A stretch of 64,000 bases of DNA. Source: Tetramitus jugosus. Its lineage: Eukaryota; Protista; Heterolobosea. This document shows positions 45,001-50,554 of this stretch, piece by piece. How positions within the stretch are numbered: position 1 is the stretch's first letter; each line of letters begins with the position of its first letter. Both the position numbers and the translations under genes were made by a program. The notes beneath the pieces were generated by a model. That model saw only the letters and a list, made by a program, of their open reading frames with translations, was not told the DNA's origin and searched no databases. The stretch covers positions 372,001 through 436,000 of the forward strand of contig OW569349.1 in NCBI GenBank assembly GCA_937625935.1, written 5' to 3'.

Positions 45001-45016
45001 TGGTGGTTGGAAATAA
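42004..45016 (+). CDS. Class I myosin (short tail: motor, IQ, TH1)
   Basis: IYTYIGDVLISVNPF, GESGAGKT, NNNSSRFGK, ILDIYGFE, YLGLLENIRVRRAG, TH1 KTNRRNKIQERVLMIT. Intron 42169-42256. Confidence 0.95.
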
Positions 45017-45066: not shown

Positions 45067-46107
45067 TTAATTGCCACTGCTTAGTTTTTTCAACAGTTGT
45101 TGCAAGTCAGATTGACCTCCACCACTGACTTCAGAATTGCCAGTCATTGGATTCAGAGGCACGTGAGAATCGAATGGATGGAATGCTGATGCAACACCAC
45201 TACTCGATCCAAAATCGATCTCCATTGGATCGTAATCATTGACCATCGTACTCGTTGGTGCTGCTAACCGTTGTTGCCTCTGCTTGTGGTGTGCCAAAAT
45301 TTGTTCATTCAATTCTTGTCCATTCTTTGCCAAGTCATGAATCAGAGCATCCCACGATTCCACATTGTCCTCCTTCAACATTTCTTCACTAGTGAATTGA
45401 AACTTTGAAATGTTTCGCTGTGCAAACTTGACCTCTCTCAACAATGTCCGCCTCTCATTCTCCAATGAATCATTCTTCAATTTTTCACTTTGAATCTGTC
45501 GTCTCAACTTCACAATCATCTCATCCAACTCTTGTTCATTCACCAGTGAATGACTATTGTTAATGTGATTACTCTCTTGTTCATTGTCATTCATTGTAGT
45601 ACCAGTCGTAGTAGTACCAGTAGTAGTAGTAGTATCTGTTGTCATGTGCGTCGTCTGTGGTTGTTGTTGTTGTTGATTGGATAATGATGATGCAAGCACA
45701 GATTGTTGATAAATGGACCGCACAATTGCAGGATCCAAATATTCCTTCTTCTCCAGTGAAAACACTGATTTGGCAGCGTAGACTTCTGCTTGATCCACAT
45801 AGAGACTGGTTGCTCTTTCCATGTCTCTAATCATTTGATTCAACGATTTGGAGAGTATTGATTTCTGATATTGTGCCTCATTGATTGACACTTTTTCTCT
45901 CGTGACATAATCATCGTGCAACACATTCAACCGCTGTTCCAATTCATCCAGAGAATCTGCACTCAACAGAGTAATGGCATTGAAAATGTCACCAAATAGA
46001 CCAATCATGTCAATGTCAAATTGACTCTTGAGTGCTTCATTTTGTTGTTGATCTTGTGATGATATCGTTGTGGTACTACTAGTAGGGGGGATTGTATTGT
46101 CGTTCAT
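45067..46107 (-). CDS. Mis12/Mtw1-like kinetochore protein
   Basis: GLFGDIFNAI...DSLDELEQRL and YVDQAEVYAAKSVFSL echo the two conserved Mis12 blocks (DDIINAV; FDKFELY..RNIF), followed by coiled coil EQELDEMIVKLRRQI. Confidence 0.6.
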   Translation of the reverse strand: MNDNTIPPTSSTTTISSQDQQQNEALKSQFDIDMIGLFGDIFNAITLLSADSLDELEQRLNVLHDDYVTREKVSINEAQYQKSILSKSLNQMIRDMERATSLYVDQAEVYAAKSVFSLEKKEYLDPAIVRSIYQQSVLASSLSNQQQQQPQTTHMTTDTTTTTGTTTTGTTMNDNEQESNHINNSHSLVNEQELDEMIVKLRRQIQSEKLKNDSLENERRTLLREVKFAQRNISKFQFTSEEMLKEDNVESWDALIHDLAKNGQELNEQILAHHKQRQQRLAAPTSTMVNDYDPMEIDFGSSSGVASAFHPFDSHVPLNPMTGNSEVSGGGQSDLQQLLKKLSSGN

Positions 46108-46156
46108 GCCTTCTTGGTCCGGTTGGTTTGGTTTGGTGTTTTTCACAAGAGTGATA

Positions 46157-46170
46157 AAATGGCGCCAAAA
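46157..46170. promoter_or_regulatory. E2F-like (TTTGGCGC on minus) and overlapping YY1-like (AAAATGGCG) element in a bidirectional promoter
   Basis: AAAATGGCGCCAAAA lies between the divergent ATGs at 46107 and 46306. Confidence 0.45.
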
Positions 46171-46305
46171 TGAAAAATCGACCGTTAGTTTCAGATTGAC
46201 TGTCTGTTGCTGAGAGAGTGGTGCTCACACAAAACCAAACAACACGGAATTATTCAATCTCAGTGTCCCTCTCCTGTTCTGTTTCACACACAAAAGCAAC
46301 ACAAT

Positions 46306-47773
46306 ATGAGGCCCAATCACTTTGTTCGTGCCATGCAACAAAAGAAGCAATCTTCTCAACAACAACAAGAACCTGAACAACAACAACAAAAACAACAACA
46401 ACAGGAGAACTCCACCACAGCAACTCATCATCATCACCATCGTTCTCGCAGTGCTACTTCTCATCACTCCTCTAATAGGCAACATCATGCATCTTCATCG
46501 TCGTCCAATAATAAGACTAGAAACGTTCAATTTGGCAATGATGAGCAAGAAACAATGGACAACAGACAAGTTCTGCAGAGAACCACCCATTCCAAGTCAT
46601 CTTCTTCCCATCATCGAAAATCATCATCTCCACCTCAACTCGAAGACTCTGATTTTATTATCGGAGAATCTAATACAATCAATCAAGCACGGCGAAAATC
46701 CATTCTGAAGCAGAGCAGACTCCCCACCACACCCCCATCCAATCGAATGTCCGACATTGAACAGACCAATACAACAACAGCAACAGGGTCCCATTCTTCC
46801 AAAAAGAGAAAGAGATCAAGTTCTCATACAACAACTGATGTCAGTGAGGCTGATGGATCATCAAAGCAAAAGAAGCGGACTCGACTTGGCGCCAAAAATT
46901 TTTGTACAAGAGTATCAAAGGATTTGAGTGACTTTGATCAATTTAAACAATTGATTTCATTGTTGGAGGAGCACACGAGAGCCAACTATTGTGCCAAGCA
47001 TCATTTCCTGTCTGTTATACGTATGTGCTCTCTAATCTCTGTTTTTCTTTACTTTGGCATAACGAGTATTTGACAAAAGTTAACAACGATTTTTTTTGTA
47101 TTCGTTTTTAGATGATAATGTTTTTAAGAAATTACACAAGTTTGTCGAAGAGAAATTAACTGAGGCGTATGCCAGTGTATTGACACCCAATGAATTGAAC
47201 AGTTCATTGAAAGCAAAGGAGCACATTTTATTGGTGTTGAAACAAAGGTTGATGAATGAAGAGGAACAATGGATGAGAGTAGACAAGGAATTGGACCAAT
47301 GTGATGAACAGAGTAGCCAGACTCTGAGTGATTCACTGTTGTTAAAATCGTTGGATGATGATCAATCATCCAATAATAACAATAATGATGAACAACATCA
47401 CGATGTGTCAATCATGGAAGCAAACAGAGTGAGTCAACCACCAGAATCACCCATATCAAAGAGGATGCTGGATCAGATGACACGAACCATTATGGACATT
47501 GATTACCTGAACATGTGTACAAGTGAGATTGCTCAATTGCAGAATATTGCCAATCGACAGGACAAATCTCTTACAAATCGGTTGAAATCCGAACTGCATG
47601 TCACTCACAGCACTTCTTCGTCTATCAAGGAAACAATAGCACACGGATCCAGATCGCCAGGGGATTCTGAAACGATGGACACAAGTGAACAAATGAACTT
47701 ACTCTATGGATTCACCGACCCTAAAAAACTGTTGCAAGATATGCAGAACGATACGAGTACAATGGAACAATAA
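46306..47773 (+). CDS. Dsn1/Mis13-like kinetochore protein
   Basis: Disordered N-terminus with RRKS Aurora-B-type site; NFCTRVSKDLSDFDQFKQLI resembles fungal FYKHI..LPEP.RMKQLL; PNELN...KQRLMNEEEQW resembles PNP.N...RL..E...W. Intron 47021-47111. Confidence 0.6.
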
Positions 47774-47862
47774 ACACTGTTGCCTTGATTGAGTGTGCAT
47801 CCGTTTTGTTTAACTTTAGAGCTCCGTTACTAGCGTCTCGGGATTCAAACAATTTATTTCAA

Positions 47863-50554
47863 TTATAAATCTTCTGAGAAGGAGCTATGCTGAGTTGGAT
47901 CGTAATGAGGATCATCCATTAGCTCCTCATTCTCTTCAAAGTCTTCCTCTGGTTGTTTTGTTGTAATAAACTTTACACTGAGCTTTGGATGAACACTCTG
48001 TTCACACTGCAGAGTGAGGAATGAGGCTCTGAGACCCATGTGTATGGAGTTGCTAATTGAGAAACCATGAGCTATGCCATAGGTTAAACCAGATGCGAAA
48101 TTATCGCCACACCCTGTGACATTCACTCTCTTGTGGGCACTCACTGGGATTGCTGAATAATGATCAAACGTAATCTTATTCCTGTTTCTATATGCATGAA
48201 CAACACCGTATTTGCCTCTCGTTAGGAATATGTGATTGGCACCGTGTTGCACGAGCAATTTCATGCAATCATAGATGGAGAGATTGTTGGGACTGATGGA
48301 TGAAGACAAGAGAGCACTGGCCATCGCATACAATTCGTCCTCATTTGGTTTCATGTATGTGATGAGCGAGAGACAATTGACTTCAATTGGCTTGACACAC
48401 TTGGCAACGGATGTTGGCTCAAAGAACACTGAAAACTTTCTATTGTTGTTCTTGTTGTTGTTGTGCTGAGCAACAAAGTGGCAAATTGTTTTCAGAGTTG
48501 CTGATGAAACATTGCCATCCACGAATAGTACGATTGGTGCACTATTCTTGTTGCTGTTGCTATTGTTGTTGTTGTTCCACTCATAATTGTTCAATTGTTT
48601 GACAAGAGTAGACAAGTAGTCAGAGATTCTCTCTGGTGATAATTCTCGTTCTAAAATGTCCATGTCAGCCACTGCAGTCACCATCTCTCCCGTCTCATCA
48701 ATCATGCAATTATAAACTGCAGTTCGACTCGTATTGTCAAGATCATTGCTACTGCTGCCACTGCCACTGCCACTGCTACTGCTACTGCTACTGCTACCGC
48801 TACTACTATTATTATTATTATTGTTGTTGTTCTCGTTCATGGGATGAAACAGTGCAACGGAAGAATGATTCAACTGTAGATCATTGAGCAAATGATTTGT
48901 CAACAATGTGCCAAACGAATCATTCTGCAACGCAGAGACAAAATGAACTTGATTCTTCATTTGCAATTGTCTGCTCAGCAATTCGAGACAGTTTCTGGCC
49001 ACACCGCCGAATGAGACTTTGACCTTGCCTGGATTCGATGTGTGAGACAAGAGGCGAGTGCCTGATTTGGGAGAGGCAGAGATATCGAGTACACATCCAC
49101 CAATGCAAATGACATTGGGAATGATGTGTTGTTGTTGACTGTTTTTATGATTGGTGGTTGTGGTTGTTGTTCTTGTGGTGAATGACTTGAAAGAGAACAA
49201 AGTGAGAGAGACACAAATGTGATGATGATGATGAGATTTGGTGTTTATCAAAAGAGACGACAAATTATTTCTGGGTCAATGTGTGTGTTATTATCAGAGA
49301 CATGCATCAATGACGTCATCAATCACAGAATGATAGAGTATCCATTACATACCTGAGAGATTAATGCTCTGGCAATCTGAGCACCCACTCTTGCATTGTT
49401 CAATATCAATGCGATATCTACATGATGTCAAACATGAAGTTTACACAAAGTGTTAAAAACAAATACACAAAAAACACAAAATACACAAAAAACAAAAAAC
49501 ACACACAAACAGACGTCTACGTACTTGCTCTCAGAGATTCACCACCAGTGAGTTCATTGACTCGTTTCAACAAGAATGGAGTGACATCCTTGCCCTGTAT
49601 GCCCTGTTCATGCGCCTCAGACAATGCTCTCTCTACGGCAGCATGGATTGGAGCATTGTTTGCTTCTTCGTTTGCTGGAATGGGAACAGCCAACAACAAT
49701 CCAGACTCGACACCCAACTGTGCACTGCTCTTGATCATTTGAGCCACTTGTTGCACAGAGTCTACTCTCATGGGTGATTCCAGTCCACTGTGTCTAGTGA
49801 AAAAGGCTGGGAATTCATTGGTTTGATAGGTGGCTACAGTGACACCCATCGTCTCCAAGTACTCCAACGTCTTTTCAATGTCCAATATGGATTTGACACC
49901 TGCACTGATGACTGTAGTGCTCGTGCGACCCAACTCTGTCAAATCAGCTGAAATGTCCATGGTATCGGAGACGCCACGGTGCACTCCACCGATTCCACCC
50001 GTCACAAACAATGAGATACCCACCATGTGAGCAATCATCATGGTGGCACTGACTGTTGTGGCACCGTGTTCTCTATTGGCAACAATGCATGACAAATCAC
50101 GTCTACTGCACTTTTTCACCAAGTGTTGTTCACCGAGTTGACTCAATCGATCCATTTCATCATCTGACAGTCCCACATGAATGATACCATCTAGAATGGC
50201 AATTGTAGCAGGAATGGCACCATGTTCTCTAATGACTGCCTCTACGCGTCTCGCTGTTTGAACATTGTGAGGATAGGGCATGCCATGAGTGATGATGGTG
50301 GATTCTAGAGCCACAATATTGTTCATTCCTCTGCCATTGCCATACTTGTTGAGTGATTGTTGAACAGATGGGTGAATTTGAATCATTGGTGGTGGTGATG
50401 GTGGTGGTATAGATACTGATGATGGTGGTGATGATGATACTGATGGTGATGATTGTTGTTGTGATTGTTGTTGTTGTTGGGTGGAAGAGGAGAGAAGGTA
50501 TTGAAGAGGTTTCGATACCAAATGATTGCTAATGACTTGTAATCGGTGATGCAT
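47863..50554 (-). CDS. Bifunctional pseudouridine-5'-phosphate glycosidase (PsuG) / pseudouridine kinase (PsuK, PfkB family)
   Basis: PsuG: VALESTIITHGMPYP, TGGIGGVHRG, DISADLTELG, GKDVTPFLL. Exon 2 (49417-49353) is NIALILNNARVGAQIA. PfkB: GGVARN, FEPTS..K, PNEDE, NVTGCGDNF. Introns 49524-49418 and 49352-49186; the latter needs an AAG acceptor. Confidence 0.85.

Follow-up and report, generated by a model that had tools for sequence, protein, structure and literature searches.

Two head-to-head genes of Tetramitus jugosus as probable Mis12 and Dsn1 subunits of a fast-evolving MIS12 complex

We analysed a stretch of 64,000 nucleotides from the heterolobosean Tetramitus jugosus (26.35-Mb genome in 56 contigs; contig 6, OW569349.1 of GCA_937625935.1, positions 372001-436000; GC ~40%), hereafter called the window, and in particular a divergent gene pair at 45067-47773, in which a minus-strand gene and a plus-strand gene lie head-to-head. 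These genes are likely to encode Mis12 (minus strand) and Dsn1 (plus strand) of a conventional, fast-evolving MIS12 complex. A first-pass annotation of the DNA had proposed this identity from the letters and open reading frames. The divergent start codons on which it had built, ATG 46107 (minus) and ATG 46306 (plus), exactly 198 bases (46108-46305) apart, were confirmed from the reading frames and the sequence, and the peptide blocks that it had listed (GDIFNAI, VDQAEVYAAKSVF, RRKS, DL.D..QFKQLI and PNELN...RLMNEEEQW) are all present. A whole-genome search found both genes in single copy.

Ndc80 (36.8 bits), Spc25 (64.4 bits) and the CENP-C cupin (52 bits) all exceed their Pfam cut-offs in this genome; therefore a MIS12 complex is expected, as part of the conventional CENP-C / MIS12 / NDC80 axis. 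When the four Pfam models of the MIS12 complex (PF05859, PF08202, PF03980 and PF08641) were run against the whole genome, none of them found a true gene.

Identity and features of the plus-strand gene

The first in-frame ATG of the plus-strand open reading frame is at 46306, exactly where conservation with the corresponding locus of a related assembly (L001, GCA_037189345.1) starts. The Dsn1 resemblance seen in the first-pass annotation stood; the annotation had left unstated that an intron of 91 nt splits the gene.

46306-47020, plus strand: exon 1 of the Dsn1-like gene, 238 codons and the first base of a junction His codon
47021-47111, plus strand: predicted intron of the Dsn1-like gene, 91 nt, phase 1, spliceosomal type, donor c/GTATGT at 47021, acceptor TTTTTAG ending at 47111 (AG 47110-47111)
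47112-47773, plus strand: exon 2 of the Dsn1-like gene, completing the His codon with its first two bases and continuing for 219 codons to a TAA stop at 47771-47773

The L001 intron (141 nt) has the same codon position and phase, and the transcript-derived homologue P0003 is uninterrupted across the exon junction and carries the same His there. No metatranscriptome contig crosses 47021-47111, and the splice model is a prediction drawn from conservation.

The plus gene is very probably Dsn1. Its exons were searched separately, and the whole protein was represented by P0003 (39% identity to exon 2). Exon 2, run exhaustively with HMMER against 1.8e9 representative proteins, returned four of them: P0002, the C-terminal part of the Dsn1-like gene in that related assembly; P0003, a full-length homologue of 415 residues from transcript-sized Joint Genome Institute (JGI) contigs (E 7.7e-18); P0004, of 1772 residues, matching in eight short stretches (E 9.3e-5); and P0005, of 274 residues (E 1.4e-4; tblastn E 1.4e-12). 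P0005 supplies the link to the family, with a score above the Pfam MIS13 cut-off (24.2 vs 23.5 bits, E 2.4e-5, profile positions 123-292), and when it was searched back against the whole genome it had one match only, window 47171-47593. Residues 165-300 of P0003 also match Pfam MIS13 (E 0.0087). Elsewhere in the genome, a PF08202 match on contig 13 (21.1 bits), considered as a rival Dsn1, lies inside a CorA-type Mg transporter with a GMN motif and was set aside as chance.

Structural comparison points to the same family. The AlphaFold 2 (AF2) model of P0003 residues 165-415, in whose alignment the window exon pieces were separate rows, reached a mean predicted local distance difference test (pLDDT) score of 73, and ~90 over the first hairpin. 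In a Foldseek search of 350,542 PDB chains with this model, human DSN1 of the KMN cryo-electron microscopy structure ranked first (8ppr_D), 5lsk_D third, yeast Dsn1 fifth (9s5n_Ds) and the isolated Head2 crystal ninth (5lsi_D), every E-value for these chains being above 0.1. Chain 5lsk_D is taken as DSN1 because the residue ranges given for DSN1 in 5LSK (116-155, 159-193, 203-245 and 258-317; Petrovic et al., PMC5101189) sum to its 178 residues. A second look with VIA placed DSN1 chains at ranks 1-3, namely 8ppr_D (Z 7.7, 189 residues aligned, chain residues 103-340), 5lsi_D (human DSN1 Head2; Z 7.0, root-mean-square deviation 3.7 A, 72 of 82 residues) and 5lsk_D (Z 6.9, 168 of 178 residues), with yeast 9s5n_Ds at Z 5.2, all below Z 8 and thus in a range common for helical proteins. 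What counts in this model-based comparison is the order of the matches and their colinearity over the full length rather than any single score. A shape search of the ESM Atlas with the P0003 model gave TM scores of at most 0.26, none of them relevant. The language-model search of the plus gene had a DSN1/MIS13 cluster at rank 2 (score 0.90), with a recognition value of 1417 against a mark of 2300 for strong evidence.

The N-terminal half of the Dsn1-like protein is low-complexity and basic, and the following parts can be recognised along the gene.

46687-46716, plus strand: ARRKSILKQS, basic-serine motif of Aurora-B type ([RK][RK]xS), kept in L001 and P0003
46801-46824, plus strand: KKRKRSSS, second basic-serine motif, R170 and S171 invariant in all four homologues including the MIS13-positive P0005
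46870-47019, plus strand: end of exon 1, predicted first Head2 helix (KNFCTRVSKDLSDFDQFKQLISLLEEHTRANYCAKHHFLSVI), conserved in L001, P0003 and P0005; helix 26-45 of the P0003 model, pLDDT ~90
47186-47272, plus strand: predicted first stalk helix (PNELN...NEEEQW), where the family is most conserved, within the P0005 stretch that matches Pfam MIS13 123-292
47447-47551, plus strand: predicted second stalk helix (SPISKRMLDQMT...AQLQNIA), conserved; helix 166-221 of the P0003 model, pLDDT 75-93; colinear with DSN1 in 8ppr_D and 5lsk_D
47693-47752, plus strand: C-terminal helix motif (MNLLYGFTDPKKLLQDMQND), conserved in P0002 and P0003, weaker in P0005; helix 239-247 of the P0003 model

Within exon 1, RRKS occupies residues 129-132 and DLSDFDQFKQLI residues 206-217; PNELN...RLMNEEEQW spans residues 25-53 of exon 2, where P25, N26, E27, N29, E49, E50 and W53 are invariant across the four homologues. 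KKRKRSSS stands ~25 residues before the first Head2 helix and RRKS ~65 residues before Head2. KKRKRSSS may serve as an Aurora-type site, in nuclear localisation, or in both roles. In human DSN1, Ser100 and Ser109 are Aurora B sites with basic residues at positions -3 and -2, and mutating the basic residues (RRAA and RRKAAA constructs) progressively strengthens CENP-C binding (PMC5101189). The equivalent segment of yeast Dsn1 folds onto Head1 and blocks CENP-C until it is phosphorylated (PMC13065467). By analogy, the basic-serine motifs of the window protein would fit this auto-inhibition scheme.

At the other end of the protein, the C-terminal helix (MNLLYGFTDPKKLLQDMQND) is a candidate Spc24/Spc25-binding helix, by comparison with the C-terminal helix of yeast Dsn1 (PMC13065467). 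The first 14 residues (46306-46347; M-R/K-P/S-N-H-F-x-R-A-x-Q-x-K-K) are conserved in L001 (885-926, minus strand), and in P0003 a comparable stretch, M-P-N-N-F-F-T-K-K, lies 31 residues in from the called start. The N-terminal extension of Dsn1 binds Csm1 in yeast and Arabidopsis (PMC12595034), and the 14 residues could be a candidate docking motif of a comparable kind.

Identity and features of the minus-strand gene

For the minus gene, an identity as Mis12 is probable, on evidence less strong than that for Dsn1. Its orthologue is P0001, 36% identical over 90% of the length, from a fragmented assembly that also holds P0002. A search of the genome with P0001 gave one real match, the minus gene itself, and a six-frame search with PF05859 brought up no rival Mis12 candidate.

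45067-46107, minus strand: Mis12-like gene in one exon, 346 codons closed by TAA at 45067-45069, from open reading frame and translation
45703-46026, minus strand: candidate Mis12 Head1 region, residues 28-135, with two sequence blocks, GLFGDIFNAIT and ERATSLYVDQAEVYAAKSVF, and an acidic helix (residues 49-67)
45550-45687, minus strand: Q/T-rich low-complexity insertion between head and stalk, residues 141-186 (46 residues), unconserved against P0001, pLDDT <40
45268-45540, minus strand: candidate Mis12 stalk coiled coil, residues 190-280, AF2 helices 191-234 (pLDDT 78-86) and 252-280, with a conserved REV.FAQ..IS.FQF block
45082-45231, minus strand: C-terminal tail with two conserved motifs, DPMEIDF (45211-45231) and SDLQQLLKKL (45082-45111)

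The link to Mis12 comes from profile and language-model comparisons. With the head of P0001, Mis12 was the top Pfam family (E 0.0027, profile positions 17-93), below threshold at 17.9 bits for a cut-off of 25.7, and residues 55-335 of P0001 matched the Mis12 profile in two stretches, likewise sub-threshold (E 0.0042). The window's own coil gave a weak, sub-threshold match to positions 113-197 of the profile (E 0.16-0.37), and the two matches, orthologue head and window coil, are colinear along it. Among the ESM Atlas language-model neighbours of the minus protein, 30 of 30 clusters were PF05859, from fungi and plants (top score 0.92, 214 of 256 features shared). Mis12 is thus made probable by two independent methods, Pfam and the language model, plus an adjacency to Dsn1 that is retained in a relative. 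Used as a separate query against Pfam, the head piece of the minus protein drew T3SSipB, Terminase_3C and Relaxase, which we regard as chance matches.

The candidate Head1 region is the best-conserved part of the minus protein against P0001; within it GDIFNAI occupies residues 39-45 and VDQAEVYAAKSVF residues 104-116, and the acidic helix is kept in P0001. The AF2 model has helices at 34-47, 53-71, 75-117 and 126-143 in the head, at low confidence. The Q/T-rich insertion is lineage-specific and separates two matching parts, one reaching Pfam Mis12 position 102 and the other starting at position 113. Its codon repeats (45597-45692) draw many unrelated metatranscriptome contigs, with a depth spike and many loose ends, and depth is uninformative there. 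In the tail, DPMEIDF and SDLQQLLKKL are kept in P0001 and the remainder is divergent; AF2 predicts a helix at 334-344. C-terminal motifs of Mis12/Mtw1 and of Dsn1 bind Spc24/Spc25 in yeast (PMC13065467), and by analogy SDLQQLLKKL is a candidate helix for this binding.

The minus-strand open reading frame spans 45067-46146, with an in-frame GTG at 46146, and its first ATG, at 46107, gives the protein of 346 residues. L009, an environmental contig of 1147 nt that is 98% identical, is colinear with 46216-45056 and intron-free. Just 5' of the ATG, at 46109-46123, L009 and the soil metatranscriptome contig X8 carry a 14-nt indel polymorphism (13 + 1 bases). Because this indel breaks the upstream frame, ATG 46107 is favoured and a start at GTG 46146 is unlikely.

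A number of results weigh against the two assignments, beside the Foldseek E-values and VIA scores given above. Direct hmmscan runs of the window proteins against Pfam found no Mis12 for the minus protein and no MIS13 for either plus exon at E <= 10, and a six-frame search of the whole 26.35 Mb with PF05859 had no match at E <= 10. The profile comparison proposed in the first-pass annotation thus found neither family in these direct scans; through orthologues it gave MIS13 above the cut-off for P0005 and Mis12 below it for P0001. P0001 is the sole orthologue of the minus protein that was found when the whole protein, a two-sequence profile and the head region were searched in protein collections, and a metagenome scan with the minus protein returned L009 alone, from the same species. 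Searches of PDB by sequence and profile, among them with P0005, the P0001 head and the window head, returned no chain of the MIS12 complex or kinetochore. The recognition value of the minus protein in the language-model search, 1841, is like that of the plus gene below the 2300 mark. Its AF2 monomer, built from a two-sequence alignment, is poor (pLDDT 52), though its helix order fits Mis12, and Foldseek against PDB and a VIA-wide search with it gave generic helical matches only. Structural confirmation of Mis12 was not obtained because this model from two sequences is poor; poor models match meaninglessly, and the generic fold matches are not evidence against Mis12. The partners Nnf1 and Nsl1 were not found by genome searches with PF03980 and PF08641. 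Weak PF03980 (Nnf1) matches on contigs 7 and 39 belong to a dual-specificity phosphatase and a bZIP protein and are chance, and PF08641 (Mis14) gave nothing. A reading that we find doubtful is that, since Nnf1 and Nsl1 escape these searches, the complex of this lineage is reduced or built with unrecognisable partners.

The missing partners bear on one alternative, in which the plus gene is Dsn1 and the minus gene is another helical protein of the MIS12-complex type, Nnf1/PMF1 or Nsl1, ancient paralogues with the same hairpin-plus-stalk plan. The minus gene could be one of the two still missing from the genome, and the evidence for Mis12 is sub-threshold or comes from a language model with low recognition, and the fold searches with the poor model gave generic matches. 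However, neither the minus protein nor its orthologue has a PF03980 or PF08641 match at E <= 10, the orthologue head has Mis12 as its top family, and the language-model neighbours include 30 of 30 for Mis12 and none for Nnf1 or Nsl1. Nnf1 is roughly 200 residues in size, and a protein of 346 residues with a long C-terminal tail and a conserved terminal helix suits Mis12/Mtw1 better. We hold an Nnf1 or Nsl1 identity to be very improbable. A complex prediction with minus residues 25-285 and two plus-gene pieces as separate chains scored 0.00 (mark 0.34) with an uncertain partner fold, and speaks neither for nor against binding.

A broader doubt is that one gene or both code for coiled-coil proteins peculiar to this lineage and having nothing to do with the kinetochore, whose Mis12 and MIS13 signals arise by chance from helical and compositionally biased sequence. 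The failure of the direct Pfam scans would be expected of such proteins, helical proteins yield many middling structural matches, and chance matches did occur in this genome, to MIS13 in the CorA-type transporter (21 bits) and to Nnf1 in the phosphatase and the bZIP protein. Against this, independent methods converge on two families that had been predicted beforehand, and P0005 reaches the Pfam gathering level for MIS13. DSN1 chains of four entries, human and yeast, stand in the top nine of 350,542 with full-length colinearity; Mis12 is alone among the 30 language-model neighbours and is the top Pfam family of the orthologue head; and the two candidates of one complex are adjacent here and still adjacent in a relative. 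We consider a chance origin of the signals very improbable. The identification of the pair as Mis12 and Dsn1 is thus kept, with no better orthologue of either in the genome and with profile and structural matches that exist through orthologues.

The shared spacer and the conservation of the pair

Between the two start codons lies a short spacer with a putative E2F-type site, and a second such sequence is found inside the Dsn1-like gene.

46108-46305, no strand: 198-bp spacer between the start codons, putative shared bidirectional promoter region; 189 bp in L001
46161-46169, minus strand: putative E2F-type site TTTGGCGCC, core conserved in the L001 spacer
46886-46895, no strand: palindromic E2F-type core TTGGCGCCAA in coding exon 1 of the Dsn1-like gene (codons L-G-A-K), a TTSGCGCS match

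When the spacer was aligned between the window and L001, TGGCGCCAA was the one solidly conserved block, and the remainder has diverged almost fully. All three matches to TTSGCGCS in the 64-kb window fall in the Mis12/Dsn1 locus (46161-46168 and the palindrome at 46886-46895). L001 also has three E2F-core matches, all of them in its spacer, where 0.12 are expected and none of 200 shuffles had as many. The genome contains four E2F_TDP matches above the cut-off, so that E2F/DP genes are present. Two of these domains lie ~250 bp apart on the same strand of contig 42 (C42:86273-87078), which suggests an atypical two-domain E2F of the E2F7/8 or DEL type, and single-domain E2F/DP genes are on contigs 22 and 8.

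Near-identical DNA was seen in runs from groundwater, soil and freshwater and also in metatranscriptomes of soil; the environmental population is ~98% identical to the window. The soil metatranscriptome contigs cover both genes; contigs cannot prove transcription, and those from RNA libraries neither rank expression nor prove transcript ends. On the minus side, L009 and one metatranscriptome contig stop at 46216/46217, and on the plus side another contig begins at 46238, which hints, as far as contigs that cannot fix ends allow, that the transcripts start ~20 bp apart with the E2F site in the Mis12 leader.

The pair is kept in one relative. In L001 the genes again face away from each other, their ATGs 189 bp apart, and the locus also keeps the intron position and a convergent myosin I gene on the Mis12 side (790-residue product cut by the contig end; L001 2351-2450). 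In the window, the plus-strand myosin I gene (stop 45014-45016) converges with the Mis12-like gene (stop 45067-45069), with 50 bp between the stops. The synteny comparison suggested at first pass thus succeeds for L001 and fails for the contig of P0005, from a more distant relative, which speaks against a general pairing: a PI31 gene lies upstream of Dsn1 there, and no Mis12-like gene. Because the Dsn1 neighbour on that contig is PI31, the pairing of Mis12 and Dsn1 is not ancient. The pair had also been called operon-like. The divergent arrangement, the conserved E2F-type core and the retention in L001 stand behind that description; the term overstates the case; the pair is absent from the P0005 contig, and the arrangement is better read as a divergent pair on a shared promoter.

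From the sequence, it is reasonable to infer that the Mis12 and Dsn1 genes are co-regulated from a shared promoter. It may instead be that the identities are right and that the genes came to lie head-to-head by neutral chance in a compact genome, stayed so in the relative through recent common ancestry, and are uncoupled in expression. One related genome keeps the pair, and it keeps myosin I too, so this may be plain local synteny, and the PI31 gene upstream of Dsn1 in the P0005 contig is in line with that. However, the spacer has diverged almost completely save for the E2F-type core, and E2F cores are concentrated here, both in the window and in the L001 spacer. Moreover, by a rough and uncomputed reckoning, two of four subunits would become adjacent among several thousand genes about once per thousand genomes. 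We hold a neutral arrangement to be unlikely, yet a serious alternative to the co-regulated pair. The strongest version of coupling is that the pair forms a hard-wired co-expression unit, in which a short bidirectional E2F-type promoter makes both subunits together, at the same time and dose, as an operon counterpart for a kinetochore module; this we find doubtful.

At the 3' end of the Dsn1-like gene, RNA-library contigs (47531-47900) cross a 90-bp gap into the 3' end of a convergent downstream gene (47863-49263, minus strand) and at 47752 lack 6 nt that the window has. The bridging could reflect overlapping 3' ends, or DNA in the libraries. A second contig of the related assembly (L008; 916-1047 and 1216-1908) has the end of exon 1 and the full exon 2 of the Dsn1-like gene and overlaps the end of L001. 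The next gene downstream on this contig is an AAA ATPase, where the window has a pseudouridine-kinase-like gene, a difference that points to a local rearrangement or an assembly issue.

Proposed working and comparison with known systems

For this lineage we infer Mis12 membership, every binding step, the phosphoregulation and the co-regulation, with a mechanism that would be transferred from human and yeast structures. By analogy with those complexes, the N-terminal helical hairpins would enter four-helix heads, that of Mis12 in Head1 and that of Dsn1 in Head2. The long helices of both proteins would pack into a common stalk, and the short C-terminal helices would dock the NDC80 complex via Spc24/Spc25. 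Head1 would bind the N-terminus of CENP-C, and the basic serine-rich segment of Dsn1 before Head2 would mask the CENP-C site until an Aurora-type kinase phosphorylates it. Both genes would be transcribed divergently from the 198-bp spacer; since an E2F-type site is its only conserved element, both subunits would probably be switched on together in the cell cycle.

The finding is a useful annotation and leaves knowledge of the kinetochore unchanged. It illustrates that MIS12-complex subunits evolve too fast for standard annotation, in a genome where Ndc80, Spc25 and CENP-C are found easily. The divergent Mis12 and Dsn1 sequences can seed better profiles for the lineage, and the proteins can serve as baits for finding the missing Nnf1 and Nsl1. 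In addition, the conserved divergent pair with its E2F-type core is a testable case of co-regulation for two partners of one complex. No account of a divergent Mis12-Dsn1 pair turned up in a limited search of the literature.

As identified here, the genes add divergent members to two known families of a known complex and are no new kind of system. Compared with DSN1/Mis13 (PF08202; human 5LSK, 5LSI and 8PPR, S. cerevisiae 9S5N), the window protein shares a basic, serine-rich and disordered N-terminal half with [RK][RK]xS motifs just ahead of the first helix, a hairpin superposing, in the P0003 model, on human Head2, two long stalk helices colinear with DSN1 103-340, and a short conserved C-terminal helix. 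Unlike the known proteins, its sequence is too divergent for Pfam, with 8-15% identity to human DSN1 in structural alignments. Its N-terminus is long and rich in N/Q/H/S, its stalk helices are separated by a low-complexity loop, and its RRKS does not immediately adjoin Head2 but stands ~65 residues before it, with KRKRSS ~25 residues before.

The Mis12-like protein has the part order of MIS12/Mtw1 (PF05859): helices with a D-I-[IF]-N-A-[IV]-type block at the N-terminus are followed by an acidic helix, then by the stalk coiled coil, and a short helix closes the C-terminal tail. Its sub-threshold Pfam matches are colinear (positions 17-102 and 113-197), and its language-model neighbours are all Mis12 clusters. 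It differs in remaining below the Pfam cut-off (best 17.9 vs 25.7 bits, through the orthologue), in the 46-residue Q/T-rich insertion between head and stalk, and in its length of 346 residues, where human MIS12 is modelled over residues 2-200 (PMC5101189).

The spacer, in turn, can be set beside the E2F-bound bidirectional promoters of animal cell-cycle genes. A wide role of E2F4 in cell-cycle gene regulation is the subject of a genome-wide study (PMC3089461), and a second paper deals with coordinate regulation of kinetochore genes (PMC4072572). The short spacer, the TTTGGCGCC-type element near the likely transcript starts and the conservation of this element within a diverged spacer are shared with the animal promoters, whereas the E2F site of the window is putative and its two partner genes both encode subunits of one complex.

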